Part shown: piece by piece, positions 19,321 to 58,391 of the stretch
How the letters are laid out: each line of letters begins with the position of its first letter
How positions within the stretch are numbered: the stretch's first letter is position 1
Source: Piromyces finnis finn
Lineage: Eukaryota; Fungi; Neocallimastigomycota
Direction: 5' to 3'
Assembly: GCA_002104945.1 (NCBI GenBank)
Contig: MCFH01000077.1
Location: 152,874 to 216,873 of the forward strand
Length of the DNA stretch: 64,000 nt
The notes under the pieces: model-generated
Databases searched by the model: none
Seen by the model: the letters and a program-made list of their open reading frames with translations, nothing else
What the model was told of the DNA's origin: nothing
Made by a program: the position numbers and the translations under genes

Positions 19321-20748
19321 TTTACAATGATTTTTATTTACAATAATATAATTTTATTTACAAGTATTTAGTATTATTTACAATAATGCTTATATAATTT
19401 TATTTACAGGTATTTAGTATTATTTATAATAATTTATCCACAATAAAATAATTTTATTTACAGATATTTTATATAAAAGATATTAGATTTTTTTTATTAA
19501 TAAAATATAATATGATAGGAAGTAAATAGTTGTTATGTATAAACAGTTATTTTAGTTTTATTGTTATTAGGGAACTTTATTCTTGAGAAAATTTTATTAT
19601 TATTTATTATATAACGTTATGAATATATTTTATTTATATCAAATCATTTTATATATTAGTATTGTTATTTATAAGGAATAGTTGTTTTAGTGTAAGATAT
19701 ATATTTTTTTTATTATTATAAAGCAGAAGATAATATTGATTATGTTGTTATAGTACCTTCAGAGTACCCGACAGTCTCGTCACCGTGTCTTTCGACCTCC
19801 ACTAACTAACTGTCATAAATATTAAGTGGTGTAATATTTACTTATTAGTTAGCGCTCTACTCCCCCATGATATGTGATAAAACTGCACTCTTACTAACTT
19901 ACTATAAAACACTTTAATTATCTTAGTAATTAATTAACCGAAAAGATAAACAAAAGTTATTTTTCGCTGAAAGTTAACTAAAAAGACAACTCAATATTAT
20001 TACTTTTAATTATTTAAAACTTATAACAATACTTTTTAATTTTATTTTATTTGACTGATGATTATATTTTGTAATTTTTATTGAATAATTTTTATTAAAT
20101 TATAATTATTATTTTATAATTACAATTTATGTATTTCTTTTTCTTAAAAAAAAATAATTAAATATAAAACTTTATTTACAGGATTTATTTTTCGCTTTTT
20201 AGTGCCTTACAACAATTTAATTAACCGGCAAAAGCTACTAACTAGAGGTGATATACTAGACCTCAAAATAAATTTAAACTATATATTTTTATGTCGCTTT
20301 ACCTTCACGACAAACCTTTAGCCTTCGGTGACTAAAGTTCCTTATTCGCCAGAGTTCACTAAAGTATTCAACTTGAGAGTCCTGTATTGCGTGCTTTTTA
20401 TCACACTAACAATCCCTTCCCCCAAGTAAGTGTGCTATTCACACTCGTCCTACTTATACAAATACTTCAGTGATTAACAGCTATAATTTCTAACCAACTG
20501 AAACTAGTTAATTATACACTGAAACTCTGTATATGAGCTCTATACGCTCCTAGTATATTTTTACAAGTATTTTTTTTTATTTATAAAGTTTTATATTTAT
20601 AATTTCTAAATATTATATAATTTCTAAGTATATAAATCATTTACTTTTATTTTCTTTATTTTTATTTATAAAATTTTAGATAAAGATAATATCACTTTCT
20701 ATATTCATTTATAGAATTAAGATAATATTTTATATTGTATCAATTAAT

Positions 20749-21308
20749 TGTCACAATAACATATATAAAAATTTAAAAAATTTGGACACATGGAAAAAAA
20801 TTATTTTTTAAATTTATTATAAAATTTCTAATATTTGAAATTATTAAATTTTTTTAAAAATTATTAAAAAATTTATTATTAAAAATTTTATATTAAATTT
20901 ATTAACTATTTACAATAATTATATTAATTATTAATTTATAAAAATTAAATATTTTATAATTAAACAATAATTAATTAAAATTAAAAAATGTAATAATTAA
21001 AATTGTTCATGTATAAAAAGAACAAAAATTGACAAAAATTACGAAGCTTTAGCGTTAGTAATTTTTTAACTTAAAGTTAATAAAATTTATAAACTCCTAT
21101 AAAACCTAAAACTTTAAAAATTTTAATATTTTTAATAACTTAATATATGCTGATATTAAGTTATTGCTAAAATAAAAATATTATTTAATTTTCTTTATGT
21201 AAATATTATTAGCTTTACGCCTTCAATAGGAAAGCGTATTATATTTGTTAATTAATATAACTAGTGTGCTTACCACACTTTTCTTTAATAAAAAATCGCT
21301 TTTTGACA
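20749..21308 (+). mobile_element. Solo LTR of family A (small internal deletion)
   Basis: TGTCACAATAAC...GCTTTTTGACA, near-identical to 4129-4745. Confidence 0.95.
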
Positions 21309-21309
21309 A

Positions 21310-22813
21310 TGATGCAATATATTTCAAAAACACCATAAATAAAATATAAGTTAATGAACGTTAGCAATAGGGAATGATAGTTGAATAATATATTAGATAA
21401 TATTGTATTTATTTCTATTTTATAATAATGAAAATAAAATGATAAAATGATAAATAATAAAAATAATAAATTTTATAATAATATAATTAAATAGATCTTG
21501 GTTTAAAGTTTCTTTATTTAATTATTATTATTATGATTATAACATTAATAACATTCAATACTAATAGAATCGAAAGTTATTATTTAATAAATATAAATAG
21601 TTAAATATAAAATGTAAATATAGAAATATGTTGATAAAATTATTATTAATAATAAAAATATAACTTCTCTGAAATAATAAACAATAAATATTCTTTTCTT
21701 TTATAATTAATATTTAAACCGAGTTACATATAATAAATACTAAATACATAATCATTAAACTAAAACTAAACTAAAACTAAACTAAACTAAAATAAAATAA
21801 AATAAAACTAATACTTAAAACTAAAATATCAAATATTATTTATAAATGAAAAGTTTTCTCTTCTTTAATATCTTATTCTTTATAACTGGGCTAGGGTTGT
21901 TATGTAACCTGGTCAGAATGTTTTGATATAATATAGCCTAATCTAGAATAAAATATTAAACTTGTTTTTAATAATATGAATTCATATGATAGATCTTAAG
22001 ATTAATTTTTTAAATTACTTTTAAATAAAAAGTATTGTTTTAATCATTTTAAATTGTAAATATTTAATATTATAAATTGAGAATAACAATTGCTGATACT
22101 AATTATATATTCTCATGATTAATTAATTAATAATTATAACTAATGATTTTTGATCCAAAGGTTTTTTGGTTTGATTATGATTGAGGTTATTAATCAAAAA
22201 TTATTTGAAGATTATTAATTAATTTTTATAATTGATTAGGTTTGGAATTAAGAATACTTATTATCTAACTTTATTTAGTAATAATGGAGAATTTTTTAAA
22301 TTGAAATATTTATAGAAAGTTGGATGACTTGAATAATGACTTTAATTATATAAATTAATATTGATCATTTTAATATATATTATTATATATTAATTGAAAC
22401 TAATTAAATCTTTAAATAGCTATATCTCAAGAACTAATAGTCTAAATTAGCTGAAAATTTGTGAGAATATAGATCTCAACTAGTACTTTCTAATAAAGTT
22501 GATTTGAAGTCTCTAGAAAAGGAAAATAGGACACGAGATTCAGAAGTTATCGCTAGTTTCGTATAGTGCATTTTCTTCTCAAGGGTTAATTTATTGAAAA
22601 TTAAATTTTTGTGATCCTTAACCCTTTTCAATATTAAATTTTTTCAAGTGATCTTTCAATTATTTTTTAAAAGTATTTTATAATTTTTGAAATATAAATT
22701 TGATTTTAAAATTGTTTATTTGAATATTTAATTTATTTTTTAATCGTCTTCTATTCTTGACATTATAGTTAATAATTCTATTATATAATAATTTATAGTG
22801 GAATTATTACACA
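21310..22813. mobile_element. LTR-like segment E (possibly two fused LTR pieces); a deleted copy lies at 60524-61161
   Basis: TG...CA bounded, flanked by stack linkers, and repeated at 60524-61161. Confidence 0.6.
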
Positions 22814-22817
22814 AAAA

Positions 22818-23957
22818 TGATGCGTTGACCGATATATTTTTGAATAATGTAATGTTTTTAATAAATAATAAATTCTATATTATTATGATGAAACAATAAA
22901 TTTAGAATAAAATAAAAATATGTTTTATAATTAACAAATAAATCACTTAAAAATCGAAAATAAACTCTTATTATGTTTTAAATTAAATATTTATTATATT
23001 TTATAATTTATTTATTATCTATTTATTGTCCCCTTTCTATGAAGAAGAATTTTATCTTCCTTTTATACATTTTCATTTATTACATGTATTATTATTTTTA
23101 ACTATTAAATATTATTATTACTATTGTTATTATTTATTAAAATTAAAAGAATAAATTAAAATTATGTCTTAGTATTATAAAATATTATAGAATATTACTT
23201 ATTTGATTTTCTTATTACTTCAAAATGTTTAAATTTAGAAAAATTATTATAAATTATCATTGACTATCATTAAATGTATAATACCTTGAATAAAATAATT
23301 AAAATTTAAAATTAAAATAATATTAAAATAAAATTAAAATAAAATTAAAATAAAAATTTAACAAAATTAAAATATTAAAAGTATCAATTATTATAAACAC
23401 TCATTTTATACAGAAACATAAAAGAGTTCTGTATTTTATCTTTGGAATTGTTATTATTGTTCTATTTCCAGGTTTTAAGTTTATCATTTTAGTAATAATT
23501 ACTCAATTAGCTATTTATTAATTTATAAGTTTAAGAGAATTTCTAAAGAACACTTGGATAAACACTGGAATTAATAATTTGATGTATACCATTTTATTTT
23601 TAGTTTATTTATTCATTTTTATTTATTTATTATTATTTTATTATTTTAGTACATTATTGGATTAAGTCGTTTTATTTTATTTAATAATTTATTTTATTTA
23701 ATAATTTATTTTATTTAATAATTTATTTTATTTAATAATTTATTTTATTATTATCACTATTAGGTCGTTTTTACTCAGAATTTATTATATAATAAAGAGA
23801 ATATTATTTATTTAAGAAAGGGTTATATTTCATAAAATTATTATTCGTTCATTTTTAAGGGTTATTATCGTTTATTTTTATTATTATAAGTTACTATGGG
23901 TTAAGTCGTGTTTATTCAGCTAGTTTTTTATTATGTTTTTATGTGAGTAGCGTATCA
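22818..23957. mobile_element. Solo LTR, family D
   Basis: TGATGCGTTG...TAGCGTATCA with AAAA on both sides. A second copy is at 35314-36452 and a 3' fragment ends at 60519. Confidence 0.85.
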
Positions 23958-23961
23958 AAAA

Positions 23962-24650
23962 TGTTACGGTTCGAGGAATTTACTTTTATTTATAAAATAT
24001 TAATAAATTTATTAATACTCAAAAATAATATTAAAGTGAAATAAGAAAAATTGTTTTATTAAGATATTAATATAAAATTATAAAATAAAATAAAAATAAA
24101 AATAAAAATATCTGTATATTCTCTAATTCTTATAATATACACCTTTTTATACTTTTTGTAAAAAATTAAGTAGTGTTAATTAAAAGAATTAGTCTTTAAT
24201 TATTTACATTAATTTTAGTATTTAAATTACTTTTAAATTAATAATAAGATTACATTACTATTATAATAAATATTTATACATATTATTAAATTGATTAACA
24301 TACATTAAAAGTTTACTTTAAATATATTTAACTAAAGAATTTTACTATTTTACAGAAATATTATTCATAATTTTAATTAATAAAAATTCATTAACTTGAT
24401 AAATTAAACTAAAAGTTCAATAAACTATAATTTTCAATATATTATTATTACTAAATTAATTTTTAAGTTTAATAAAATAAAATTTAAGTTCAATAAAAAT
24501 AATTATTAATAATTTTAAATATAATTTAAGTGTATACATTAATTTACAAATAAGAATATTGTAAAGTTTTCATACATTTAGGAACAATAATGGATTAGGT
24601 TATAATCATTAATTATGACAAGAATAACATTATTTGTTGGTTCCTTAACA
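23962..24650 (-). mobile_element. Solo LTR of family B
   Basis: TGTTACGGTTCGAGG...GGTTCCTTAACA, matching the LTRs of element B, with AAAA on both sides. Confidence 0.92.
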
Positions 24651-24654
24651 AAAA

Positions 24655-25275
24655 TGATAACGGATTGGTAGTTATATTACAACTTTTTAACTACTTCTTC
24701 TGTTATCTTATATTGTTTTATCTCGACAGCTATTGTACGAGCTTTAACAATATCTACTAGTTTTATTAATTTATTTTAAGTTATTTTATAATTTTAATAG
24801 TTTTATTATTTTAATAATATTTATATAGAATAATAACACCAGATTTATTCTATAAAATATTATTTATTATTAACACAATAATTACAAATTAGACAAGTTT
24901 AATTTCGTTTTTATATTTTCTTTTATTTATTGTTCTTACGCTCTTTTTAACAATAATTTTTATTATATAAAAACTTATTTTTGTCTTTTAAATATTATTA
25001 TGTATTCACTAATTAATTATATTAACTATTATTAAAATTTAACTTATTATTAGTAATCTAAGTCTTCTCATTTTCTACTAAAAATTATTATTATTCTTTA
25101 TATTAAAAATTATTTTTATAATTTAATCCAATCAAATATATAAATTTATAAAATATTTGATTTTATGTAAATTATATTTTTATAATAAACTATATAAAAT
25201 TATTTAATAATTATTTTATAATAAAATTTTCTACTAATATCAAATTTATAATATATTTATAATTATTATTTATCA
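24655..25275. mobile_element. Solo LTR, family F
   Basis: TGATAACGG...TTATTTATCA with AAAA flanks. Homologous pieces lie at 12760-13053 (inverted) and about 15575-15770. Confidence 0.75.
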
Positions 25276-25282
25276 AAAAAAA

Positions 25283-25314
25283 TGATAAATAATTAAATTT
25301 ATAAATTATGAATT

Positions 25315-25387
<73 letters not shown>

Positions 25388-25461
25388 TTAAAACACAGAT
25401 AGTTGAAAATTAAAATAATTAACATGTATAAAATTATTAAATTAAAAACTATAAATGTAAA

Positions 25462-25492
<31 letters not shown>

Positions 25493-26529
25493 TAAATTAA
25501 ATAGTTTATATTTGTTTATAATTATACTTTAAAATAATAATTTTGTATAAATAGTGATAGAATTATTTTATTTTAAAAGATGTTCCTAATAATCCAGTAA
25601 AATTAGATAATAATATTAAATTTTATTAAAATAATAGTTGTGATTATATTTACATACATTCAAGATGTATTAAACCATAACATATATATATTTAACAATA
25701 CAAGAGTTATTAAATATTAAAACTTTATAATTAAATAAAATAATTTTATACTTTAAACTAACAAAGACTTGCAAATGAACAAGTATAAAAATCATTTATT
25801 CTATTTTTATTTTCTTATTTATTTTTATTTATTAAATTTTAGATACAAATATTATCATGTTAAGGATTTCACTTCAGTTAGGTCGGAACGTACATATTTA
25901 CCCTAAGTTTATCAATTAATTAAATAATTGAATTAGTAAATTTTTAAATAAATAATATTTTATTAACTTTATTTATTAATAAATTTTTATTTAAAGAAAA
26001 ATCTTTATTTATTAGTTATTATTATAATTAGAGTAAATATTAAATGTAATGAACTCTCGAAATTCCTAATGATAGGAATTTTCTCGAGTATTTATACTAT
26101 CTCTAATATTAAGGAATACATTTTAAATTTAATACATGACTAATTATTTATATTAATTAACTATTCTATAAATTAATTATATATTAATTATATATGACTT
26201 TTCACTCGTGTTAAATTTAATAATTATAAAAGTCATATTATCAATCATTTGTAGAAGGAATGATTATTTTATAATTTAGTTTTAATTTCCTTCTTAATCA
26301 AATGAACAAAGAAATATTAATTCAAACTTTAATAAATATAAAATCTTAATAATTATAATTAATTAATATTTCTTAAAATATTATTTAATTATGTTTTATA
26401 ATAAAATATTTCTAATTAATTAAACGAATAAAACACTAATTAAATAAATAATCATGAATCCACTAATATTCATGACATATCACTTTCTATATTCCTTTAT
26501 AGAATTAAGATAATATCCTCTTCGTATCA
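25283..26529. mobile_element. LTR-like segment G/J
   Basis: TGATAAAT start. Its 3' end (ATATCACTTTCTATATTC...GTATCA) is shared with the LTR ending at 20742. It contains an (AAT)n tract at about 25317-25386. Internal composition is unresolved. Confidence 0.55.
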
Positions 26530-27140
26530 AAAATGATAAGTGTTTAATATTATCTTAATTTATAATTAAATAATTATAAAAGTGATAATATTCTTATCAA
26601 TTTATATAAAAAAAAAAGATTTAAAATAAATTTTTATTATAAAGTTATTTGAAATATTTTAATTCGACATAACGATTATTAACAAAATATAAAAGTTATG
26701 TTTTAAAAACACAATTTTAAAATATATTTTTGAATCAACTCTTTATTTAATACATTTATTAAAAGTATTGATTGATTTTTAAATTAGGAAATAATTACAT
26801 GTATTTATAATTTTCTTTCTGTTTTAACTTTTTAAAATAAAATATTAATATGTTTTAAAATAATAATGAATAATAAATAAAAGAAACAATTTATTTTAAA
26901 GTAATTAATTTAATTAATATAACCCTATTTTACTATTTAAAATGTTATTTATACTATGTTTATTTTATAACAAAAATATAATTTAAACTGAGTTTTAATA
27001 AATAATTTTTATACTTTTAATTAAACATTTAAATATTATTATTATTTATTATTTATTTTTAAGTTGTTTTGAGGGTTAGTTTATATCAAGATTATAATTT
27101 CATATTTATTAATTCCAATTTATATCAATTTCTCCCTTCT

Positions 27141-30100
27141 TTAAGAATGAACTTCGTCCCTTGAAGTTCCTAAAGATTCCTCTCTTATTGTGTAGGGATA
27201 GATGTTTTTGATATGAACGTTTCTTGCTAATAGTTTTCCGGTTTGTGGGTCTTCTAAAACGACAGTATTGTATTGTGGTTTCTTTACAACTTTGAATGGT
27301 CCATAAAAATAGGGTTGCAGTTTAGTTCTATTGATTAATTTTATCATTACGTAATCTCCTTCTTTATATTTCTTTTTAAGTGCTTTGGAAAATCCAATTC
27401 GATGTTCCCAGTATTTATTTGCGTAATCAGAGTATTCCATTGCTTCTTTTACCCATTTGTAGTGTCTTAAAAATCTTCTAAAATTGTACTCTTCTTCAGT
27501 TTCTTGTGGTTCTTTATATAAGTCTGGAAACATAATTTCCATAGGCCACGTATCTCGTCTTCCATATAATAATTCGAAGCTACTAAACTTTGTTTTAGTG
27601 CTTTTTGTGGTTCTTAGTGCCCATAATACTGATGGTAGGCACTCATCCCAATCCTGTTCATCTTCTATTAACATTCTTAATATCTTACCTATTTCCCGAT
27701 TGCGATTTTCTATCATTCCATTTGAAGGTGGGTGATGTGGTGATACATAGTGCACCCATGATCCGTATAAATCTATCATCATCTTAGTTACGTCCGAAAT
27801 AAAAGAACTTCCATTATCAGTTATTATTAATTCTGGTGGACCATGTCGAGATATTACTTCTGTTAAAAATTTAATAATTTCTTCTGATTTAGTATTTGGG
27901 ATTGCTTTGGCTTCAGGCCATTTTGTGAAATAATCTACTAAAGTTATTATGTAACTATTACCTGATCTGGTAGTTGGAAGTGGACCGATTATATCTAGTC
28001 CAACTCTTGTAAATGGTTTTTCCACTGGTGTGATATGGTCTTCTGTATATTTTGGTTGTGGTTTTGGTCTGAAGAGTTGACATTTCCTGCATGATTTTAT
28101 CCACATTTTTACATCGTTCCATATTCCAGGCCAATAATACGAATCCATAATTCTTCTAGTAGTTTTATCTGAACCTTCATGTCCTATGTTGTGTGCTCTG
28201 TTTATAATGTCTTTTTTATCACTCTCATTCTGTATAACTTTCAAAAACTTATCGTCTTTTACAAAATATAATGTATTGTCTAAAACTTTATAATTTTTAT
28301 TAAAATATTTAATTATACCTTCTGGGATATCTAAATCTTTTGGATTAATGTCATTCAAGATAGCGTTGATACTATTTATAATACCTTCATTTCCTTTTGA
28401 TGGTAGTCTTGATAAGGCATCTGCAAATACATTTCTTTTTCCTTTTTCGTATTTTATTGAAATATTGTATTTATTTATTTCTTCTATCCATCTTGCAATT
28501 CTTCCTTTAGTTGGTACATTTTTGTTGAAAAATCCAATTAATGGTTTGTGGTCAGTGATGAAAATGGTTTCATTTTTATTACTAATAATATATGGACTAA
28601 ACTTTTTTAAACAGTAAATTAAAGCTAAACCCTCTAATTCTGTTACTGAATAATTTTCTTCACATGGCTTTAAAGACCTGCTTACACAATAAATTGGATG
28701 TTCCAATTTATCTTCCTCCATTTGCAAAAGAACACCCCCGATACCTTTAGTTGAAGCGTCTGTTCTGACTATAAAATGTTTATTGAAATCTGGATAAATT
28801 AAAATAGGATCCACTAATAGGCAGTGTCTTAAATCTTCAAATGCGTTGTTACATTCTTCTGTCCATATGTAATCTACATTTTTCTTGAGGAGTTTAAATA
28901 GAGGACTGGCTCTTATTGAAAAGTTTTTAATGAATTTTCTATAGTAGCTAACAATACCTAAGAAGGATCTAAGTTCTGAGATGTTTCTTGGTTTTTCCCA
29001 TAGGGCAATACTTTGGACTTTGGATGGCGATGTTTTCAAACCTTCTGAAGTTAATACATGACCTAATACTTCTACTTTATCTTTAAAAAAAATGACACTT
29101 TTGAAGGTTAATAGATAAATTATATGTAGAAAATATTTCGAATACCTGTTTTAAATGACAAATGTGTTCTTTTAGATTTTTGGAATATATTACTATATCA
29201 TCAATATAAACAAATAAACATTTGCCAATTAAGGGCAAAAGTATTCTGTTCATTTCTCTTTGGAATGATGCCGGTGCATTGGTTAGACCAAAGGGCATCA
29301 CTAAGAAATTGTAGTTCCCGAATTTAGTTGTGAAGGCTGTTTTCTCGATGTCTTCCTTATTCATAGGTATTTGATGATACCCTGAAAATAGATCTAATGC
29401 AGAGAATATTTTCGCACCTTTTACTGAAGAGAAAAGTTCATCTATAAATGGGAGTGCATAGGAATCTTTTATGGTAATGTTGTTTAGTTTCCTGTAATCT
29501 ATGCACATTCTCCATTTTCCATTCTTTTTCTTAACTAGTAGAACTGGAAATGACCATGGCGAGTGCGATGGCTCAATCAATCCTTTGTCTAATTGTAATG
29601 AGGTATATCTAATGATAAGGGTTAGACTAGAAAATCATTAAGGTTAGATTAATGAAAATTTCATAATTATATTTTTATAACCAATCATTAAGTAATTAAT
29701 TCACTTATCAAATTGTATTAAAAAAAATAATTTTCATGTATAAAAGAGAGAATAAGAAAGATAAAATAGTTCTTTAGTGTTTTTATTAATAATTAATAAA
29801 AATTAGTTTTTTTTTGTTTCGTCTTTAGTTTGATAATACACTGACCTAGCGAGTTAGTCGTATTATAATAATAAATTTAATAAATAAACATTATTAAAAA
29901 AATACATATATATTTGATACATTAGAGTGTGTGTGTTTATTATTATAATATTTCGTTACACTAATAAAGATATTATTTCCTTTTTTAATATATCTGAATG
30001 ATCTTTCGAAAGTTTGTATGGCTTTAATTTTATAGGTTTGTTCGAAGTGGTGGTAATAGTATGTGGTTCCAATTTTGCGATTGTTAATTGTGATAATGAA

Positions 30101-31377
30101 GTAGCCATACACTTTTGATTGTTTATGATAAGTTCTTTGAATTCTTTCCGTACTGGGTTAGGTACACTTTCAATTATTTCTTCTATGGTTTGTTGAAATT
30201 CTTTTTCTTCTTCTTTCGTTACTATAACCGAGTTTAATAGTGGTGTATTTTGTCTATTATTTATTATATTTGTTATCTTTATTAAACCTTCTTCGCTCTT
30301 TTTATAGATTGCATCATCATCAGGGTCTATTAATAATCTATATTTCTTTTGAATTGTTCTTCCAATGATTATTTCATAAAAGGTATTATAATAATCAATA
30401 ATATAAAAATTCTCTTTAATATTTAAATTATTATCTATACTTATTTTTAATGGTATATATTTATTCGTAAAGATTATAGTTCCATCCGCTAGTTTTATTG
30501 TTAATTCTTCTTCTGTACTACAGATGTTTATATTTTTAATTTTACTTAATCCTTCTTTTGTAATAATGTTTACATTAGCACCAGTGTCAAATAATATTTT
30601 AAATGGTACGTTATTGATTTCCCCTATAATTATTGGAATATTAGTGTTGGTGATATTGCAAATAATTCTTTCTACTCTTGGTTTTAGTCCTATTTCTAAT
30701 TCTTTTCTAATTGCTGGGCTGGCTGCTAATAATTGTGATAAACTTATTTTTGGAAATAGGTTATAAGCTTCCTTTAATATATTGAACTTTTGATTTTTAT
30801 TAAGCATTTGGATTTCTGTCATATTCCTCTTAGTTATCATTTTTTTACTATTATTTTCTATATTATTTGGTGTTTCCATAATAGTTTCTTTTTGCTTAAG
30901 AGTTTTTGAAGTTTCTTCTATTTTATTAATCTTTGTATTTCCATCATCTTCATTATTTTCCTCCTTTCTATTAATGTTTCCTTTATTGCCTCCATTATTT
31001 TTATTGTTTTCCTCATTTATTTTATTTTCATTAGTTTTGTTACTTTTATTATTTTTGTTGTCATTTTCTTCTCTGCTTTCTTCAACATAGCTTATTTCAT
31101 TTTGGTTATCATTATTGTATTCATTATATTCACTTTCTTCTTCTGAGTCGATATCCATTATTCTTCTTCTTCTATCTCTGATTTCTTTCTTCTTTTGCTT
31201 TAATATATTAATTTTTGGTTGGTTCAAAATGGAAGGTTTTATTATTGACTTATTAGTATTATTTATTTTATTTTTATCTAATAGTTTAATAGATGTGTTT
31301 TTATTTTTGTGAAGCACATTTATTGTATTTAGATTTTGATTTGGACGTGCAATTTTGTTTATATAGGGAGATTGCAT
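27141..31377 (-). pseudogene. Pol (PR-RT-RNaseH-IN) of element I, interrupted
   Basis: LFDTGAN protease, CIDYRKLN/YIDDIVIYS RT, VRTDASTKG RNase H, HNIGH/CRKC and YFYGPF integrase. It is interrupted at 29594-29960 and frameshifted at about 29085. Confidence 0.95.
29594..29960. mobile_element. Solo LTR (367 bp) nested in pol of element I
   Basis: TGTAA...TTACA termini and a 5-bp TSD CTAAT (29589-29593 and 29961-29965). Removing it restores KEIISLL-DKGLIEPSHSPW. Confidence 0.93.
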
Positions 31378-31388
31378 ACTCCCATCAA

Positions 31389-44832: not shown

Positions 44833-44879
<47 letters not shown>

Positions 44880-44948
44880 ACTTGCTTGTAATAGTAGCAG
44901 GAAACAATCGGTAATCTTAATTTTTTCATTTAGTGTCTAGTTGGTGAA

Positions 44949-49592: not shown

Positions 49593-50758
49593 ATTAATCT
49601 CGCAGGAGCTCGACTTAGAGAGAGAGATTGTAAAGATATCAAACGCCTCTGTTTGATATCTTTAATGTAACTTAAGCCACAAGTATTATTGTTTAAGTTA
49701 CACAAATTATATTCAGAAAAAGAAAATGAGACATAATTTATTTATTAATAATTAAAGTTTAAAACAAAATAAATTATTAATTTATTTTTAATGTTTAACA
49801 AGCAAATTAATATTCTCAATTTAAATCCCTAGTTTTAGTATTGTTTTTTTATAGAAATAGATAAATAATAAATGATTAATATATCAATAATACATGGGCA
49901 CATATTCAAATTAAATAGTACTTAATTTGAATTGCCAATTGTATTTTACTAAAAATAGTTATAGTTTAAATATTTATTAATAATTAAGATTTTAGTGTAG
50001 ATTTTAAATAATAATATATAAGAAATAAATAGTTATAATATAATATAAATGTATTTAGGAAAAATATAAATAGAAGATATTTTTCATCATTTTATCGATG
50101 TAATTGTTATTATTAAAATTCTATTATAATAAAAGATATTTTATAAAACAATTTTTTATTTTATTTTTTCAAAATCTTGTGTTATTGTAATAGAATAGAT
50201 ATCCTAATCTATTCTTTCAGTGTTCAACATTACATTTATATTTTAAAAAGAATAATTTTTAAAAATCGTTCAATTAAAAAAAAATATTTTTTTTTTTTTT
50301 TAAAAAATTATAAATACTAAAATAATATTTAATTTATTAAAAATTTGAATTACAATAATAAGTATAGTAGAACAGCATTTCACAGCAATTTTCCAATACT
50401 TATTTAGGGTGCTTAAGTAGTTCACAATTGCCCAGCTTACCGTATTACCAGTGTCATGTAGCAATTATGCGAGGCACTTCTATTTCTCTAGCAAAATAGA
50501 AAGGTTCAGCGCTTTCCAGTATCCTACTGTGAAAGATAAACTAGACCTAAAAACTTAACCACTAATTCCTAAATAAGTACTGCTTCTAAAGCGTACTAAT
50601 TCAGTTCTACTAAAATATTATACCTTAAAGCTTCAACAGTAATATAAATATTACCTATAACTTTGAAGGGTAATAAATTTTTAAGAAATTTATATAATAT
50701 TTTAGTAATATTTTAATATTACTTTATCCTATGTATTAATAATTTTTATTAATATTAT

Positions 50759-50776
50759 TCCCCGATATCTCCACCA
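50759..50776 (-). promoter_or_regulatory. PBS of element B, complementary to a tRNA-Ala 3' end
   Basis: The minus strand reads TGGTGGAGATATCGGGGA. The implied tRNA end ...CCCGA-UAUCUCC-A-CCA has U70 and A73. It lies 7 nt from the LTR. Confidence 0.82.
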
Positions 50777-52201
50777 ATTTTTATGTTACGGTTCGAGGAA
50801 TTTACTTTTATTTATAAAATATTAATAAATTTATTAATACTCAAAAATAATATTAAAATGAAATAAGAAAAATTGTTTTATTAATAAAATTGTTTTATTA
50901 AGATATTAATATAAATTTATAAAATAAAATAAAAAAAAAAAATAAAAATATCTGTATATTCTCTAATTCTTATAATATACACCTTTTTATACTTTTTGTA
51001 AAAAATTAAGTAGTGTTAATTAAAAGAATTAGTCTTTAATTATTTACATAATTTTAGTATTTAAATTACTTTTAAATGAATAATAAAATTACATTACTAT
51101 TATAATAAATATTTATACATATTATTAAATTGATTAACATACATTAAAAGTTTACTTTAAATATATTTAACTAAAAAATTTTACTATTTTACAGAAATAT
51201 TATTCATAATTTTAATTAATAAAAATTCATTAACTTGATAAATTAAACTAAAAGTTCAATAAACTATAATTTTCAATATATTATTATTACTAAATTAATT
51301 TTTAAGTTTAATAAAATAAAATTTAAGTTCAATAAAAAATAATTATTAATAATTTTAAATATAATTTAAGTGTATACATTAATTTACAAATAAGAATATT
51401 GTAAAGTTTTCATACATTTAGGAACAATAATGAATGGATTAGGTCATAATCATTAATTATGACAAGAATAACATTATTTGTTGGTTCCTTAACAAAAAAA
51501 CTGTCACAATAACATATATAAAAATTTAAAAAATTTGGACACATGGAAAAAATTAAAAATTTTTTCAAAATTTGAAAATTTGAAAATTTGAAAAAATTTA
51601 TTTTTTAAATTTTTATTAAAAAATTTCAAAGTATAAAATTTCTAATATTTGAAATTATTAAATTTTTTAAAATTATTAAAATTTTATTATTAAAAATTTT
51701 ATTTTAAATTTATTAACTATTTACAATAATTATATTAATTATTAATTTATAAAAATTAAATATTTTATAATTAGATAATAATTAATTAAAATTAAAAAAT
51801 GTAATAATTAAAATTGTTCATGTATAAAAAGAACAAAAATTGACAAAAATTACGAAGCTTTAGCGTTAGTAATTTTTTAACTTAAAGTTAATAAAATTTA
51901 TAAACTTCTATAAAACCTAAAACTTTAAAAATTTTAATATTTTTAATAACTTAATATATGCTGATATTAAGTTATTGCTAAAATAAAAATATTATTTAAT
52001 TTTCTTTATATAAATATTATTAGCTTTACGCCTTCAATAGGAAAGCGTATTATATTTGTTAATTAATATAACTAGTGTGCTTACCACACTTTTCTTTAAT
52101 AAAAAAATCGCTTTTTGACATTACTAACGCTTATTATAAAAGTGCGCTAAGCACCAATTAGTTAGTAATTATTAATAACTAAATATAATAATTAAAGTTT
52201 A

Positions 52202-55200
52202 ATGGAAAAGTCTCCACTTACACCTATTAAAGTGGATACAAAAGAATTTTTTAATCGCCTACAAACTACCAAGAGAGAACGTTCCCCAGGAAATACTCCC
52301 GTAAGAAAATCAAAGATGCCTAATCATTCCGGACAAGCTAATGCTTCTACGAGTAATCCTACTCAGAAACCAACTACTAATGAGGATCTCAAGGCCCTCA
52401 TTGAGTCTTTAACTGCTACCTTAACTGGGAATATCAATCAGTTAAAGGTTGATATTCAAGCTACCAGAAGGGAAAACGAAAGTCTCAATGATCGTTTGAC
52501 TGTTTTGGAAAACTCTACTCAAGTTATTATGGGTAAGATGGCTACCTTAGAAGTCAACGATGCTAGGAAAGACAATCAACTCGCTGATATCAAAGCTCAT
52601 ATCAGCAAGGCTACTCAAAGAGTTGATGAGTTGTCTACTCCCGTTACTCCTTCTGCTACTACCCCTCACGAACCTGACGGTGACGTCATCATGGGAGATG
52701 CTTCGCCTCCAAACGTCGCTGAAAAAATGTTTTCTTACTCAGGAGAAAGTATTCAATTACGTAGATTCATCCGTCGATGCGAACACCACTTCTTAAGACA
52801 CATCAAGTTCTATGGAAACAATGAAGCTATGAAAGTAAACTTCATTGAAGATTGTCTTACTGGTGATGCTGCAGATTGGTACGATGTTGAACAAGCAGAC
52901 TTCCAGGAATCTCATCCGAATAGAAAAGTTCTTTACGAAGCTTTAAGTAAGAGATTCCTTAACCCGAAGGATATCAACATCACCAAAATCGACCTGATGA
53001 AGCTCAGACATAGTTGGGGAAAAGCTTCCGAATACTTAGGAAAATTCTCCCAATATGTCAAATTAATTGGATGTTCCGAAGACATTCAATTAACCATCAT
53101 GCTTTTCCAAGTTCGACCTACCGTGAACCACGCCTTTAGTAAATTAACTTCGGATAGACAGACGTTAGAAGAACTGAAGAATCTTCTAATCAAATATGAT
53201 GCTTCCAAGGATACTTATTACGATGATACTTTGGAAAGACAAGCTAACTACAAGGACAAAGAGCCCTTAATAGCTAATTTATTAGGTATTCATGGCAGTC
53301 TTTATTCCAAGAACCCTAACAAGACTAACAATCGTAATAACAACCAAAGGAACAACAATAACAACAATCGCCCGTCTAACCAAAAAGGAAAAGGCTCCAG
53401 TAACTTGGATAGCAAGTCTAGTACCCAAAATCCCAATAAAAGTACTAAACCTAATAATGGTACTTCATACTCCAGCTATCTCTGTGAAGTAGAAGAGCAA
53501 GATATCTTAGAGCTACCAAATCCTGATCCGGAGAAGTATCCCATCGTGAAGACTAGTGTAAAAACTTCTAAAGGATCTAGACAGGTTATCACTTCGTCTC
53601 TCTTAGATTCCGGCTCTACTACCAATGTAATCCATATGGATTTAGTGAAGAAACTAGGAATTAAGACCATACCAGCTGATACTGTTGTAAAGGTCATGGG
53701 AGGTAATGTCCTAATGCATTACATCACAGAAGAGTTCAACATTGTAATGAACTTATCTTCTATAGGAGGAACTCGAGAAGAAGTTCGTCAATACAAACTT
53801 CGATGCCACGTAGCTGATCAGCTTCCTTCTTCGATTCTCCTAGGTTCTAAGTTCATGAAAACCAACTTCTTCTGTATCTTAACACAACCTGACCATTCCT
53901 TTACAGTTAAAATTGGTCCTGTTCCTTTCTCCAACCATAATGGATCTGAGATTAAATCTCCTAACTTTAGGAATGATTTGAAGAAATCTACACCTCTTCA
54001 TGAAGTTATGTTTATCACGGAACTCGAAGACTCAAATCTAGATAAATCAACTTCCATTCCAACAGAAACAGTCTTCATAGCCGATGATCAGAATCCTGAA
54101 CTAGTAGAATCTATCAACGGTATACCTTTGGAATATGAAGATTTATATGAAGCCTTCAATGAAGAACGAGCCGATGAACTTCCTGAACATCGTGTATATG
54201 ATTGTTCTATCGATTTGAAACCTAATGCTTCATTATTTTATGGGCCAATTTATCCAACTACTCCTACTGAACGTCAATTTATTAAGGAGTATATTGAAGA
54301 AAACTTGAATAAAGGATTCATTAGAAAATCCCGATCTCCTGCTGGACATCCAGTTCTACTCCAAGATAAGAAGGATGGTAGTCTAAGATTTTGCGTTGAC
54401 TATCGCAAGCTCAACGACCAAACTATCAAGAATGCCTATCCGCTACCTTTAATCCTATCAGTCTTTGAATCAATGAAAGGTGCTAACTATTTCACTAAGT
54501 TAGACCTCAAGTCAGCTTATAATTTAATTAGGATTAAAGAAGGTGACGAGTACAAGACTGCATTCAGGACGGCATTTGGTCACTTTGAGTACTTAGTCAT
54601 GCCTTTTGGACTAACTAATGCTCCTGCAGTTTTCCAAGCTTTCATTAATGATATCTTTAGTGATCAAATTAATAAGTACGTTCAAGTGTACTTGGATGAT
54701 ATCATTATCTACTCCAAGACCCTTGAAGAACATGTTCAACATGTTAGAAATGTTCTTCAATTAATCATTGAAAACAACTTAGTTGCGAAACTCAAAAAAT
54801 GTGAGTTTCACAAAGCTGAAATCGAATTTTTGGGTCACGTAATCAGTAAGGAGGGAATCAAAACTGATCCTCACAAAATTGAAGCAGTTAAGAACTGGCC
54901 TATCCCTACTACTGTGAAAGAAGTTCAGTCCTTCTTAGGGTTATGCAATTACTACCGTCGCTTTATCTCTAACTTTTCTAAAATTGCAAAACCATTATAC
55001 AATTTAACTAAGAAAGGCGTCACTTTCATATGGACAGACGAGTGTAATAGAGCATTTAATCAACTTAAAGAATTTCTTACTTCAGCCCCAGTTTTACTTT
55101 GTCCTGATCATGATAAACCATTCATAGTTGAATGTGACGCAAGTGACTTTGCTATCGGGGGAGTACTTTCACAAAAAGGTGATGATGGAGACCTGCATCC

Positions 55201-57016
55201 AGTTTATTACTTTTCTAAAACCCTTCATGATGCAGAACTTAATTACTCTATCACCGAAAAGGAACTCTTAGCAATTCGTCAAGCTTTTATCGAATGGCGT
55301 CACTTACTTCAAGGTGCAAAATATCCTATTACCGTTTATTCAGACCATCGAAACTTGCTTTTTGCTACCAAACCGCAACTTCTATCCCAAAGACAAGCTC
55401 GTTGGCAAGAATACTTTGCTACCTTTGATTTCAAGATTATCTATCGACCAGGAAAGAAAAATGGTAAAGCTGATGCTCTCTCTCGTAGATCCGACCATAT
55501 GCTCACAGTTGGTAAGGATATAAGTGAATCGTCCTTACTTAAACCAACTCAATTAGAAGGATTCAACGAAGATGAATGCTACTTCTCTATGGAAACTAGC
55601 TTCATTGACGACATTAAGCAGTGCTACCTTCAAGATGAAACCGCTTGTCAGATTCTTAAGGATCTTGAAGTTCCAAATAGTGATCATCCTTGGATTCTTC
55701 AAGATGGCCTTTTAATAAGAACCAAACATCCGGAGCAAGTATATGTTCCAAGTCAACTAAGACTCTTAGTTATTAAGCTCAACCATGATGCACCCACTGC
55801 CGGTCACTTGGGAGTCGATAAGACTTATGACATTCTTAAACGTAATTTCTATTGGGTTAATATGCGTCAAGATGTCGAGTCTTATATTCGAAGCTGTAGT
55901 GTATGCAAGGCAATGAAAACCGATCACCATGCTCCTTATGGTAATATGATCCGTGTCCCTCTTCCGGAACTTCCATGGCAACACCTACAAATGGACTTTA
56001 TCACGGACTTACCATCAAGACCTTGTAATTCTACCTTACCATTCGACTCTACCAATCCGAACCACCATCAAGGTACCATAATGGTTACTACTTGCTACTT
56101 AACTAAGATGATACACTTAGTTGGGTTCAAACATTTACCCACTGCTAAGGAAACTGCTACTGCTTTTCTTAACCATATTTTCAAACTTCACGGATTCCCC
56201 TTATCTATTGTTACAGACCGTGGTACTCAGTTCGAAAGTCGTCTTTGGTCCCACTTGATGGAATTCTTTAATATCGATCACCACTCTGCTACTACTGGCC
56301 ATCACCGCACTGTTGGACAAGTAGAACGTAACAACGACTACGTTGAAACTTATCTTCGTTGCTACTTAGCTCAATTTGATGATCTCAGTTGGATGGATCA
56401 TTTGTACTTAGCTGAATTTTGCTACAACAACTCCATCCATACTTCCACCAAGCAACCACCATTTCTCTCCGTTTATAATTATCAAGTTCACGCAAACCCA
56501 CAAGTTGCAGACCTTGTTTCTTCTTTAGGACTTCATCCCCTCATCGATAGCTTCTCCCATAATTTAGCTGACCTTAAGCATACTCTCGAAGTCAGTCGTA
56601 CCCGTTATCTCGATGAAAAGGATAAGCACCTTTATCACAACTTTAAGCGCTTCAAGGTCCACGATCTTGTTTGGCTTCGCAAACCCGCTAATTATCATCC
56701 TCCATTAGCGTTCAAGCTCCAAACCCGCAAGTATGGTCCATACAAGGTCACTGGTGTCGATGAATCTAAGCTCAACTACCGCCTTGATTTATCTACCTCA
56801 CCTTTCCCTCGTGTCTACCCCGTATTCCACATCAGTGAACTCGAACCATATCATCCCACTCCTCACCATCTATTGCTCAACCATCCCAACTCCAATGAAA
56901 TCACCAAGATCCTTAGTTCTCGTAAATCGGGTCATTTTTACGAGTACTTAGTCACTTTTACTGACTTATCTCAACGTTGGATCAATGCTGACACCATTGA
57001 TAAGGATGACTACTAA
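52202..57016 (+). CDS. Gag-Pol polyprotein, family A2 (premature stop removes the last 23 aa)
   Basis: Nearly identical to 4827-9710, with TAC>TAA at 57014-57016 in the chromo-like tail. Confidence 0.96.
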   Translation: MEKSPLTPIKVDTKEFFNRLQTTKRERSPGNTPVRKSKMPNHSGQANASTSNPTQKPTTNEDLKALIESLTATLTGNINQLKVDIQATRRENESLNDRLTVLENSTQVIMGKMATLEVNDARKDNQLADIKAHISKATQRVDELSTPVTPSATTPHEPDGDVIMGDASPPNVAEKMFSYSGESIQLRRFIRRCEHHFLRHIKFYGNNEAMKVNFIEDCLTGDAADWYDVEQADFQESHPNRKVLYEALSKRFLNPKDINITKIDLMKLRHSWGKASEYLGKFSQYVKLIGCSEDIQLTIMLFQVRPTVNHAFSKLTSDRQTLEELKNLLIKYDASKDTYYDDTLERQANYKDKEPLIANLLGIHGSLYSKNPNKTNNRNNNQRNNNNNNRPSNQKGKGSSNLDSKSSTQNPNKSTKPNNGTSYSSYLCEVEEQDILELPNPDPEKYPIVKTSVKTSKGSRQVITSSLLDSGSTTNVIHMDLVKKLGIKTIPADTVVKVMGGNVLMHYITEEFNIVMNLSSIGGTREEVRQYKLRCHVADQLPSSILLGSKFMKTNFFCILTQPDHSFTVKIGPVPFSNHNGSEIKSPNFRNDLKKSTPLHEVMFITELEDSNLDKSTSIPTETVFIADDQNPELVESINGIPLEYEDLYEAFNEERADELPEHRVYDCSIDLKPNASLFYGPIYPTTPTERQFIKEYIEENLNKGFIRKSRSPAGHPVLLQDKKDGSLRFCVDYRKLNDQTIKNAYPLPLILSVFESMKGANYFTKLDLKSAYNLIRIKEGDEYKTAFRTAFGHFEYLVMPFGLTNAPAVFQAFINDIFSDQINKYVQVYLDDIIIYSKTLEEHVQHVRNVLQLIIENNLVAKLKKCEFHKAEIEFLGHVISKEGIKTDPHKIEAVKNWPIPTTVKEVQSFLGLCNYYRRFISNFSKIAKPLYNLTKKGVTFIWTDECNRAFNQLKEFLTSAPVLLCPDHDKPFIVECDASDFAIGGVLSQKGDDGDLHPVYYFSKTLHDAELNYSITEKELLAIRQAFIEWRHLLQGAKYPITVYSDHRNLLFATKPQLLSQRQARWQEYFATFDFKIIYRPGKKNGKADALSRRSDHMLTVGKDISESSLLKPTQLEGFNEDECYFSMETSFIDDIKQCYLQDETACQILKDLEVPNSDHPWILQDGLLIRTKHPEQVYVPSQLRLLVIKLNHDAPTAGHLGVDKTYDILKRNFYWVNMRQDVESYIRSCSVCKAMKTDHHAPYGNMIRVPLPELPWQHLQMDFITDLPSRPCNSTLPFDSTNPNHHQGTIMVTTCYLTKMIHLVGFKHLPTAKETATAFLNHIFKLHGFPLSIVTDRGTQFESRLWSHLMEFFNIDHHSATTGHHRTVGQVERNNDYVETYLRCYLAQFDDLSWMDHLYLAEFCYNNSIHTSTKQPPFLSVYNYQVHANPQVADLVSSLGLHPLIDSFSHNLADLKHTLEVSRTRYLDEKDKHLYHNFKRFKVHDLVWLRKPANYHPPLAFKLQTRKYGPYKVTGVDESKLNYRLDLSTSPFPRVYPVFHISELEPYHPTPHHLLLNHPNSNEITKILSSRKSGHFYEYLVTFTDLSQRWINADTIDKDDY

Positions 57017-57109
57017 AGCACCCTTTTAGCTGATTACCAACGTCGCGCTTACCAACAATTCACCAATTCCGTCCCAGATTCTTAATCTGGACCCCACTTA
57101 TTAGTACCC

Positions 57110-57285
57110 CACCTACTAGTGTCTACCACCCTTACTCCTTCACTACCCACCTATCGCCACTACCCCACCTACTAGTGTCTACCACTCTTACTCCTTCACT
57201 ACCCACCTATCGCCACTACCCCACCTACTAGTGTCTACCACTCTTACTCCTTCACTACCCACCTATCGCCACTACCCCACCTACT
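57110..57285. repeat. 56-bp C-rich tandem repeat x3 in the 3' UTR of A2 (single copy in A1)
   Basis: AGTGTCTACCAC recurs at 57118, 57174 and 57230. Confidence 0.92.
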
Positions 57286-58319
57286 ACCCACAACTCCGCT
57301 ACCCACTAGTCGCCACCACTACAACTACCAACCACTATTCCGCTACCCAAGCACCCTCTTTCGCCTTTGCCCTCAACCCTCAAATTTCGCAACCTTTTCC
57401 GCACCCCAAAATCCGCTTCCCCTCGAGTCATATCATTTCCCTAACCTTCACGTGTAGTCTCCATTTCTGAAGAATCCACGTGATACCCTCTCAACTTTTC
57501 TTGAACACTTTTACACTTCACTTTTTCAACACTTAGATTTTTTTTCAAAAATTGTGAATTTCCATTTTTTGAAAATTCTCAAAATTTTTCTAAGTGTCGT
57601 GGAAGTGTCCATGTCCAAATTATTATGACGTGCCAGTGTCCATAAATTTTTGGGTCGTCCGGCGAAACGACCCTTAGGACGGGCAGTGTCACAATAACAT
57701 ATATAAAAATTTAAAAAATTTGGACACATGGAAAAAATTAAAAATTTTTTCAAAATTTGAAAATTTGAAAATTTGAAAAAATTTATTTTTTAAATTTTTA
57801 TTAAAAAATTTCAAAGTATAAAATTTCTAATATTTGAAATTATTAAATTTTTTAAAATTATTAAAATTTTATTATTAAAAATTTTATTTTAAATTTATTA
57901 ACTATTTACAATAATTATATTAATTATTAATTTATAAAAATTAAATATTTTATAATTAGATAATAATTAATTAAAATTAAAAAATGTAATAATTAAAATT
58001 GTTCATGTATAAAAAGAACAAAAATTGACAAAAATTACGAAGCTTTAGCGTTAGTAATTTTTTAACTTAAAGTTAATAAAATTTATAAACTTCTATAAAA
58101 CCTAAAACTTTAAAAATTTTAATATTTTTAATAACTTAATATATGCTGATATTAAGTTATTGCTAAAATAAAAATATTATTTAATTTTCTTTATATAAAT
58201 ATTATTAGCTTTACGCCTTCAATAGGAAAGCGTATTATATTTGTTAATTAATATAACTAGTGTGCTTACCACACTTTTCTTTAATAAAAAAATCGCTTTT
58301 TGACAAAAACAACAAAAAT

Positions 58320-58391
58320 GGGGTGTTAGCTCAGCGGTAGAGCAATTGACTGCAGATCAATAGGTCTTCGGTTCAAATCCGGAACGCCCCT
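58320..58391 (+). tRNA. tRNA-Cys(GCA), identical to 10833-10904
   Basis: Same 72-nt cloverleaf, followed by T-runs. Confidence 0.97.

Follow-up and report, generated by a model that had tools for sequence, protein, structure and literature searches.

Stacked Ty3/gypsy elements and solo LTRs anchored upstream of a tRNA-Cys gene in the anaerobic gut fungus Piromyces finnis

The retrotransposon Ty3 carries no chromodomain, inserts in either orientation within a few nucleotides of the RNA polymerase III (Pol III) start of tRNA genes, and generates a 5-bp target-site duplication. Targeting of tRNA genes is the textbook safe-haven strategy of retrotransposons in compact genomes, and the known cases so far come from budding yeasts, fission yeasts, and social amoebae. 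DGLT-A of dictyostelids is a Ty3/gypsy element that inserts in either orientation 13–33 bp ahead of tRNA genes (PMC5911963), and Tyl3, Ylt1, and Tyl6 of Yarrowia lipolytica and Beta/Tca8 of Candida albicans lie ~5 bp upstream of tRNA starts or 6–30 bp upstream of the mature coding sequence (PMC5911963, Table 1). In S. japonicus, ten Ty3/gypsy families, Tj1–Tj10, cluster with tRNA genes; the clusters are centromeric or telomeric, and the one family tested, Tj1, makes a 5-bp duplication and inserts 1–10 bp before the tRNA start (PMC4600332). Spaller et al. noted in 2016 that a single tRNA gene can receive repeated integrations, upstream of an element already there (PMC5006619). With this and the clustering of Tj1–Tj10, the principle has precedents; a preliminary description of the present locus had named none for a multi-family, base-precise stack of ~37 kb.

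The window—the whole stretch of 64,000 nt that was analyzed—features between 20749 and 58305 a stack of 13 TG...CA units placed end to end with A-rich linkers of 0–7 nt. Three of the units are full-length Ty3/gypsy elements, and the other ten are LTRs that stand alone or are truncated; a putative chromovirus is nested in one of the full-length elements. The LTRs in series belong to nine families (A, C, D, E, F, K′, U2, U5, and U6), and a tenth family, G, is nested in C. The features, with the strand where it is assigned, are the following:

4129–10820, plus strand: A1, an independent full-length element of family A, 12 nt before a paralogous tRNA-Cys gene (10833–10904)
12749–20742: degraded distal pile with reversed U5 and D LTRs, an H-type LTR, and a reversed K′ LTR
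20749–21308, plus strand: solo LTR of family A, first unit of the series, starting with TGTCAC
21310–22813: composite unit U2, a U2-type start and end enclosing ~840 bp of other repeat material
22818–23957: solo LTR of family F, 1140 bp, AAAA on either side
23962–24650, minus strand: solo LTR of family C, 689 bp, with 96% identity to that of the full-length C element
24655–25275: solo LTR of family U5, 621 bp
25283–26529: solo LTR of family U6, 1247 bp, linker A7 to the left and AAAA to the right
26534–33922, minus strand: E, full-length, 594-bp LTRs ~99.3–99.7% identical, AAAA on either side
33927–34678: solo LTR of family D lacking its final 47 bp
34679–35312: solo LTR of family K′, 634 bp, joined straight to the truncated D with no linker
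35314–36452: solo LTR of family F, 1139 bp, with the duplication ACAA, which is formed by the terminal 3 nt of the K′ LTR and one A
36458–37269: solo LTR of family D, 812 bp, linker ACAAA to the left and AAA to the right
37273–51494, minus strand: C, full-length, 710-bp LTRs 99.86% identical, host of the nested G
43938–50234, plus strand: G, putative chromovirus inside C, identical 606-bp LTRs, duplication TTTAT, outside the tRNA series
51502–58305, plus strand: A2, full-length Ty3/gypsy element of family A, two identical 619-bp LTRs, duplication AAAAC
58306–58319, plus strand: spacer AAAACAACAAAAAT, 14 nt, its first 5 nt being the right-hand target-site duplication of A2
58320–58391, plus strand: tRNA-Cys(GCA), found by ARAGORN and by Rfam (RF00005, 67.9 bits), the anchor of the stack
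60470–64000: second abutting series of an F end fragment, TAAA, U2, AAAA, D, AAAA, a further TG-starting unit, and an E-like interior

The TG...CA ends of the units are true repeat boundaries, the points where homology to other copies stops, both within the window and at 20 other loci. The linkers are AAAA at 22814–22817, 23958–23961, 24651–24654, 26530–26533, and 33923–33926; A7 at 25276–25282; ACAAA at 36453–36457; AAA at 37270–37272; a single A at 21309 and at 35313; and AAAAAAC at 51495–51501. All of these had been listed in the preliminary description, and each indeed has ...CA to its left and TG... to its right. The gene found by ARAGORN and Rfam likewise bears out its placement of the stack end 14 nt from tRNA-Cys, and its count of at least six LTR families is exceeded by the nine in series and the nested G. 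Its extent of 20742–58391 stands in that an older LTR does end at 20742, but the first unit starts at 20749 and not at 20746, and a degraded pile continues to ~12749. Two units had been drawn differently: 33927–35312 is not one unit but the truncated D followed by the K′-type LTR—a small deletion took the end of D together with its linker—and 21310–22813 is composite rather than simple. The degraded distal pile also holds the end of a U6-like LTR (20626–20742) and an E-like element with 65–75% identity to E; its linkers are TCT and ATTAAT, with no AAAA. The unique upstream segment X (3319–4072) was sought at the distal end of the stack and not found there. The second series, beyond the tRNA gene, meets the contig end at 64000, and its anchor is therefore out of sight.

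A2, C, E, and G feature the Pfam domains PR–RT–RNaseH–IN in the Ty3/gypsy order. A2 has a single intact Gag-Pol ORF of 1604 aa (52202–57016), and the top PDB match of its integrase is that of Ty3 (7q5b, E 1e-21). The ORFs of C are intact on the minus strand (38006–41992 and 42049–42990), and its 4-nt duplication AAAA borrows the terminal A of the neighboring LTR; the pol frame of E is split into several ORFs. A1 is the sole unit at its locus, with the duplication AAAAT and LTRs 98.4% identical, and the tRNA-Cys gene next to it is identical to that of the stack. Identical LTR pairs are found in A2, in the K element of locus L002, and in the C element of locus L003; together with the intact ORF of A2, they are an indirect sign that the elements may have been active recently. 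The C-terminus of the predicted G integrase is chromodomain-like (Chromo PF00385, E 2.7e-5, 24.4 bits against a cut-off of 25.1), and a search of the A, K, C, and E integrases with the Chromo profile, at E up to 1, detected no chromodomain. The uninterrupted C copy in L003 displays the empty site of G, whose insertion site was examined in the nested copy; two more G solo LTRs lie in L004 and L015.

Comparison of the predicted integrases shows two lineages with one and the same target. A and K, which have 60% identity over pol, are closest to Ty3 and make duplications of 5 bp. Identity is 48% between C and E and ~30% between either of these and A and K. By its similarity to C, E is placed in the 4-bp lineage—to which C belongs, the solo-LTR families D, F, and U5 also having 4-bp duplications—since the AAAA flanks of E itself are uninformative.

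The sample used to study targeting comprises 20 loci picked solely by Rfam tRNA score and is centered on tRNA genes, mostly tRNA-Arg(TCT); with the two genes of the window, it yields 21 non-redundant tRNA genes, and several of the loci are near-duplicates of each other. LTRs were annotated by BLAST against those taken from the window and L002; finding the termini by exact 14-mers had been dropped as too strict and noisy. In 14 of the 19 other tRNA loci, the same LTR families end 10–17 nt upstream of the mature tRNA 5′ end, from which all distances are measured, and with the genes of the window the count is 16 of 21; random positions in the same DNA have such a terminus at 10–17 nt in 10 of 5000 cases (0.2%). 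The preliminary description had proposed to tabulate tRNA–LTR distances and linkers genome-wide, and the present tabulation covers this tRNA-centered sample and one flanking region, so that these families may have further copies away from tRNA genes. The spacers are 11–16 nt long and depend on the family: 11–12 for K, 12–14 for A, 14 for D, U5, and U6, and 14–16 for C, F, and U2. At other loci, U5 lies 14 nt from a tRNA-Arg and 16 nt from a tRNA-Ser gene. The proposed fixed offset is hence a family-dependent window rather than a single base, so that a newcomer may land as much as 3 nt inside the LTR before it or leave a 7-nt linker. Insertion occurs in both orientations: For D and U5, either end can be the one that faces the tRNA gene, and in the window A2 is in sense and C and E in antisense orientation. 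At the paralogous tRNA-Arg loci L017 and L019, which share the spacer, the tRNA, and a left flank identical at 120 of 121 positions, a K solo LTR sits at one and the same nucleotide, reversed in the former and forward in the latter.

The tRNA-proximal duplications of A and K are 5 bp long in seven of seven cases (AAAAT, AAAAC, AAAAT, AATTA, AAAAT, AAAAT, and TATGA). Those of C, D, and U5 are 4 bp long (TATT, AAAA, ACAA, and TATT), as is that of F. A duplication of 4 bp, as proposed for all units in the preliminary description, therefore holds for C, D, F, and U5 but not for A and K; its length belongs to the integrase lineage and not to targeting. In other stacks, the linkers equal the first 4–5 nt of the spacer of their own locus (TATT, ACAA, AATTA, and TATGA): L003 has the linkers TATT and TATT and the spacer TATTAAAAATTATTAA, and L020 has the linker ACAA and the spacer ACAAAAAGTAGGAGTA. 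Because the linkers copy the start of the local spacer, they are target-site duplications and do not reflect a preference for AAAA. Peeling the stacks from the proximal side yields perfect duplications in the informative cases: ACAA, ACAA, and, appearing after peeling, the K duplication AAAAG in L020; TATT and TATT in L003; and AAAAC, AAAA, and ACAA in the window. Once A2 and one copy of AAAAC are taken out of the window, the distance from the tRNA to the next LTR is 16 nt, as had been stated. The informative cases were used since poly-A linkers make the automatic peel of the window ambiguous and errors spread to the steps after a failed one. In the proximal-first order, the duplications of U2, of the distal A solo LTR, and of D at 36458–37269 (off by one base, CAAA against the expected AAAA) fail to match. 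L020 also features the order K-A-F-ACAA, which is similar to F after K′ in the window, the K subfamily being related.

The stack is polarized. Identity within LTR pairs drops outward from 100% in A2 over 99.86% in C to ~99.3% in E; A2 and C are intact, E is broken, and the distal part at 12.7–20.7 kb is degraded. Full-length elements occupy position 1 in 5 of 18 cases and deeper positions in ~2 of 40 (hand count, Fisher p = 0.025). Median pairwise divergence, an age proxy that is confounded by subfamilies in C, F, and K′, grows with distance from 2.8% for the A2 LTRs to 7.0% for the A unit at 20749–21308 and from 5.5 over 7.3 to 8.0% for D; C and K′ break this gradient. Because the linkers of the window are mostly AAAA, the order of insertion is not provable from them alone. 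The junction A/A/U2 is common to the window and L014, with 88.8% identity across it over 900 bp, and L007 holds an inverted duplicate of an A/U5 pair, so that some adjacency stems from duplication or exchange and not from integration. Of the chronological record that the preliminary description had proposed, the polarity of LTR identity and ORF decay stands, but the order is blurred by the 47-bp deletion, the composite unit, the shared junctions, and the inverted duplication in L007.

We interpret the stack, with a probability of roughly 85%, as the product of repeated position-specific Ty3/gypsy integration into a narrow window 11–16 nt upstream of the mature tRNA-Cys 5′ end, a window that probably coincides with the Pol III start site. 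Each integration copies 4 or 5 nt of the target and leaves the tRNA-adjacent sequence unchanged; since the target is duplicated, this sequence is the same as before and still a target, so that a newcomer inserts between the previous element and the gene. One copy of the duplication stays behind as a short linker while older elements shift outward. Over time, full-length elements turn into solo LTRs, and small deletions, duplications, and exchanges between stacks blur the order. As with Ty3, the initiation complex of Pol III (TFIIIB/TFIIIC) may serve to tether the integrase. The core of this scheme—serial integration near the tRNA, a regenerated target, and older insertions pushed out—had been put forward in the preliminary description and is supported by the 14 of 19 loci, the spacer-matching linkers, and peeling.

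An array that owes its growth mostly to segmental duplication, to unequal or ectopic recombination, and to gene conversion among LTR-rich regions, with few true integrations at this site, is improbable. Such events have left traces, namely the junction shared with L014, the inverted A/U5 duplicate in L007, the near-duplicate loci of the sample, and the deletion and composite unit within the stack. Recombination does not, however, make matching 4–5 nt duplications equal to the local tRNA spacer, and the stack holds nine different families, most of its junctions are absent from all sampled loci, and each of the proximal elements A2 and C features a duplication of its own and a pair of near-identical LTRs.

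Elements that target resident LTR termini or each other, with the tRNA gene as the first landing place only, would account for the frequent contact of newcomers with the preceding LTR end, or overlap with it by 1–3 nt, as in F after K′ with ACAA and in C after D. These overlaps are, however, predicted by the family offsets from the tRNA (K 12, F 16), and the linkers vary from 0 to 8 nt while the spacers hold at 11–16 nt. Moreover, A1 lies alone, 12 nt from its tRNA, with no adjoining LTR, and across the 16 of 21 tRNA genes the distance is constant per family regardless of the distal content; targeting of LTRs is therefore very unlikely. Least probable is an artefact in which a long-read assembler strung repeats together at the end of a contig, although the window is the final 64 kb of its contig and several small contigs are near-duplicates. 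Chimeric joins occur within repeats and not at exact TG/CA termini with matching duplications, and the same architecture is found on many contigs, megabase-sized ones (C1, C156, and C176) included. In addition, 40–57% of the sampled words of 20700–26600 are present in 2016 DNA runs, 57% in one of them, possibly from the source sample.

Position-specific integration next to tRNA genes bears on several further points. As the linkers are locus-specific duplications, stacks can be peeled for the relative order of insertion, which is a practical way of dating transposon invasions where subfamily structure confounds ordinary dating by divergence. tRNA-anchored stacking also accounts in large part for the repeat structure of the assembly and for its contig breaks. 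The case from Neocallimastigomycota broadens the phylogenetic base of tRNA-gene targeting by at least nine LTR families and two lineages, some members young and intact, on a shared target of a few nucleotides, and it allows a natural test of a single versus a repeated origin of Pol III tethering. A joint reading, which we hold only tentatively and consider rather doubtful, is that two distantly related integrase lineages, the Ty3-like one with 5-bp and the other with 4-bp duplications, independently gained the same Pol III start-site targeting; that, with their non-autonomous LTR families, they might turn many tRNA genes into ordered, layered invasion records readable by peeling; and that piles of tens of kilobases may act as heterochromatin islands attracting chromoviruses such as G.

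A literature search for tRNA-targeted elements in anaerobic fungi found none, and no new mechanism is revealed here. The Yarrowia and Candida elements resemble the present ones as Ty3/gypsy families just upstream of tRNA genes; they occur, however, in ascomycete yeasts in few copies, and deep multi-family stacks are unreported in PMC5911963. DGLT-A, compared by insertion habit, shares the position upstream of tRNA genes and an AT-rich host, whereas the range of insertion is narrower here (11–16 nt) and the elements are young and intact. For a genome with many families on its tRNA genes, Tj1–Tj10 are the nearest precedent; the accessible part of that report describes no serial stacks of base precision whose linkers are locus-specific. 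Ty3 is matched by A and K in the lack of a chromodomain, the 5-bp duplications, and the position 11–14 nt before the mature tRNA end, and the A integrase is nearest to that of Ty3. Its contact with TFIIIB serves here as an analogy only. In contrast to Ty3, the host P. finnis is an early-diverging anaerobic gut fungus, at least nine LTR families and two integrase lineages—one with 4-bp duplications—take part, and the stacks in this genome reach at least 12 layers and ~45 kb. The principle is known from Ty3, Tj1, and DGLT-A; new are the host, the two lineages, and the depth.

The window forms the final 64 kb of its contig in an assembly of 56,455,805 bases and 232 contigs. Its G+C content per 2-kb bin ranges from 12 to 43% and is mostly near 20%. 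The plus strand carries two tRNA-Cys(GCA) genes of identical sequence, at 10833-10904 and 58320-58391. Comparing the window with itself and, by BLAST, with LTRs excised from it and from L002, a sampled tRNA locus elsewhere in the genome, resolves the DNA before the second gene into abutting TG...CA units of lettered LTR families. All linkers named in the preliminary description are present in the sequence, each between ...CA and TG.... Read outward from the tRNA, the order is as follows.

Units of the stack upstream of tRNA-Cys, each with the linker that separates it from the next
Spacer, next to tRNA-Cys: AAAACAACAAAAAT
51502-58305: A2, full-length; linker AAAAAAC
37273-51494: C, full-length, with nested element G; linker AAA
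36458-37269: D solo LTR; linker ACAAA
35314-36452: F solo LTR; linker A
34679-35312: K' solo LTR; joined to the next D LTR without linker
33927-34678: D solo LTR minus 47 bp; linker AAAA
26534-33922: E, full-length; linker AAAA
25283-26529: U6 solo LTR; linker A7
24655-25275: U5 solo LTR; linker AAAA
23962-24650: C solo LTR; linker AAAA
22818-23957: F solo LTR, distal; linker AAAA
21310-22813: composite U2; linker A
20749-21308: A solo LTR; linker ATTAAT
Ending at 20742: older LTR end

Beyond 20742, the pile continues as degraded LTRs and an E-like element, 65-93% identical to other copies, to about 12749, so that it measures about 45 kb rather than the roughly 37 kb first proposed. A further abutting series, from 60470 onward, is truncated where the contig stops. 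The segment 3319-4072, which precedes the first tRNA-Cys locus, has an 84% identical counterpart at 59773-60469, downstream of the second; the homology stops exactly where the third LTR series starts, a position that would lie some 63 nt before a tRNA-Cys, and the contig ends before any tRNA is reached. Downstream of both tRNA-Cys genes (11570-12500 and 59163-59484), repeats of 9 and 12 nt form long arrays, and similar arrays occur within LTR U6 and inside element E. U2-type LTRs elsewhere stop at ...CTTGACA (window position 22762); the window copy has 51 bp more, ending in CA. These tails, at 22763-22813 and 61111-61161, may be what is left of an older LTR that was interrupted by an insertion some 51 nt short of its end.

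The association with tRNA genes extends beyond the window. Whole-genome Rfam scoring gives 63 tRNA genes, and 10 kb around the first 20, picked by tRNA score alone, was studied; counts take the first gene per tRNA cluster at non-redundant loci, plus the two genes of the window. A terminus of one of the window's LTR families lies 10-17 nt upstream of 16 of 21 tRNA genes (14/19 excluding the window), compared with 10 of 5000 random positions in the same DNA. The other five genes show a terminus farther out, at 22 nt, a truncated tRNA-Glu that a K terminus precedes by 12 nt, or degenerate ends. Both orientations are found. The offset is 11-12 nt for K; 12-14 nt for A; 14 nt for D, U5, and U6; and 14-16 nt for C, F, and U2. 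The fixed offset proposed earlier hence holds as a narrow window of 11-16 nt and not as a single base, since it differs by family. Among the sampled loci, tRNA-Glu(TTC) and tRNA-Arg(TCT) form tandem pairs separated by 9-10 nt (L004:8919-9074, L006:8920-9074, and L008:901-1055). In L009, L010, and L011, the tRNA-Glu is internally truncated, yet a K LTR lies 12 nt upstream.

The precision of the site can be appreciated in two paralogous tRNA-Arg loci, L017 and L019, 30 kb apart on one contig. Their left flanks are equal at 120 of 121 positions, and they have the 8-nt linker, spacer, and tRNA-Arg in common; the downstream sequence differs. Both carry a K solo LTR (L017:3897-4392 and L019:8494-8988) at the same nucleotide and with the same 5-nt duplication, in opposite orientations—most likely two independent hits on one position. 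A1, the full-length family A element 12 nt before the first tRNA-Cys of the window, and A2 are likewise independent insertions because their duplications (AAAAT versus AAAAC) and spacers differ and no other LTR lies beside A1. An alternative target, the ends of resident LTRs instead of the tRNA, is all but ruled out by this independence and by the solitary position of A1.

The linkers behave as target-site duplications. For tRNA-proximal A and K units, the flanks match over exactly 5 nt in 7/7 cases (AAAAT, AAAAC, AAAAT, AATTA, AAAAT, AAAAT, and TATGA). For C, D, and U5, the match is exactly 4 nt in four of five (TATT, AAAA, ACAA, and TATT), the sole exception being a degenerate D LTR in L015. 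The 4-bp duplication originally suggested thus applies to C, D, and U5, and not to A and K. Linkers of other stacks are not AAAA and copy the start of their own local spacer: L003 has TATT twice beside the spacer TATTAAAAATTATTAA, and L020 has ACAA beside ACAAAAAGTAGGAGTA. Removal of units from the tRNA side in L020 reveals three perfect duplications: ACAA for U5, ACAA for F (the three terminal bases of K followed by A), and AAAAG for K. The last is seen only once the two younger units are peeled off, which shows directly that units nearer the tRNA arrived later. In the window, the same procedure gives AAAAC for A2, AAAA for C (borrowing the terminal A of D), and ACAA for F (here the three terminal bases of K' followed by A). 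Farther out, the units show AAAA, which is uninformative; D misses by a single base, and neither U2 nor the distal A solo LTR agrees with this order.

These junctions show a cycle in which elements integrate 11-16 nt before the mature tRNA end, the 4- or 5-nt duplication restores the target, earlier elements are displaced outward, and full elements decay to solo LTRs. The insertion window probably corresponds to the Pol III start site, with integrases presumably tethered by TFIIIB/TFIIIC as for Ty3; this part leans on established knowledge reviewed in PMC5911963. The preliminary interpretation was right in its core, and its observation is confirmed at the sequence level.

The reading of the stack as a chronological record stands for the proximal layers and wherever duplications peel, and not throughout. 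LTR-pair identity drops outward from 100% in A2 to 99.86% in C and about 99.3% in E; ORFs are intact in A2 and C and split in E. Median pairwise divergence within a family grows toward the distal end in A (2.8%, then 7.0%) and in D (5.5, 7.3, and 8.0%) and shows no such gradient in C and K', where subfamilies confound the measure. Full-length elements make up 5/18 units in the first layer versus about 2/40 deeper (hand count; Fisher p = 0.025), and degradation is strongest in the distal 8 kb. The order is also disturbed: 47 bp and one linker are lost at the D/K' join, the U2 unit is composite, and the A-A-U2 junction recurs in L014 with 88.8% identity across it. In L007, a pair made of an A LTR and a U5 LTR with one base between them is present in two inverted copies (1358-2594 and 7243-8486), which is a rearrangement and not two integrations. 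Several small contigs are near-copies of one another. The contigs of L010, L011, L012, and L013 (18-33 kb) nearly duplicate parts of larger contigs, with the same stacks and few differences; they represent alternative assemblies or else segmental duplications of very recent date.

In A2, C, E, and G, the coding domains (protease, reverse transcriptase, RNase H, and integrase) follow one another as in Ty3/gypsy elements. Matches to the Gag-Pol of the element nearest the tRNA include proteins from rumen-type metagenomes, at up to 86% identity, and one from Orpinomyces. As judged by sequence comparison, the elements of the tRNA series fall into two deep lineages, A/K and C/E: A shares 60% identity with K, and the two reach 39-46% against G; between C and E the figure is 48%, and against A, K, and G it is about 30%. 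The best solved relative of the A integrase is Ty3; for the C integrase, that of prototype foamy virus (PFV) outscores Ty3. A chromodomain was sought in A, C, E, and K and none was detected; the G integrase carries a chromodomain-like tail just below the Pfam cut-off. G (43938-50234, identical LTRs) stands outside the tRNA series because it sits inside C, flanked by a separate duplication, TTTAT, and its empty site is visible in L003, where C is uninterrupted. What attracted G may have been the pile, as heterochromatin, and not the tRNA. At L002, a U5 LTR (761-1381) has a primer-binding-site-like sequence (TGGTGGAG...) on its far side, in L002:1-760, and some U5 copies therefore still have internal sequence.

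Among about 8.4 million openly available papers and preprints, no report of tRNA-upstream integration in Neocallimastigomycota or P. finnis was found. What appears to be new is the host lineage, the number of families using one site, the use of two integrase lineages with differing duplication lengths and slightly differing offsets, and the depth and base precision of the stacks. Ty3/gypsy elements tabulated just upstream of tRNA genes include Ty3, Ty3p, Tj1, Tyl3, Ylt1, Tyl6, Beta/Tca8, and DGLT-A (PMC5911963), and PMC4600332 describes ten Ty3/gypsy families clustered with tRNA genes in S. japonicus. Given such targeting, a self-regenerating target is an expected consequence of a known mechanism, and the novelty originally claimed narrows to scale, host, and lineages: the scale of the stack is unusual, and the mechanism itself is of known type.
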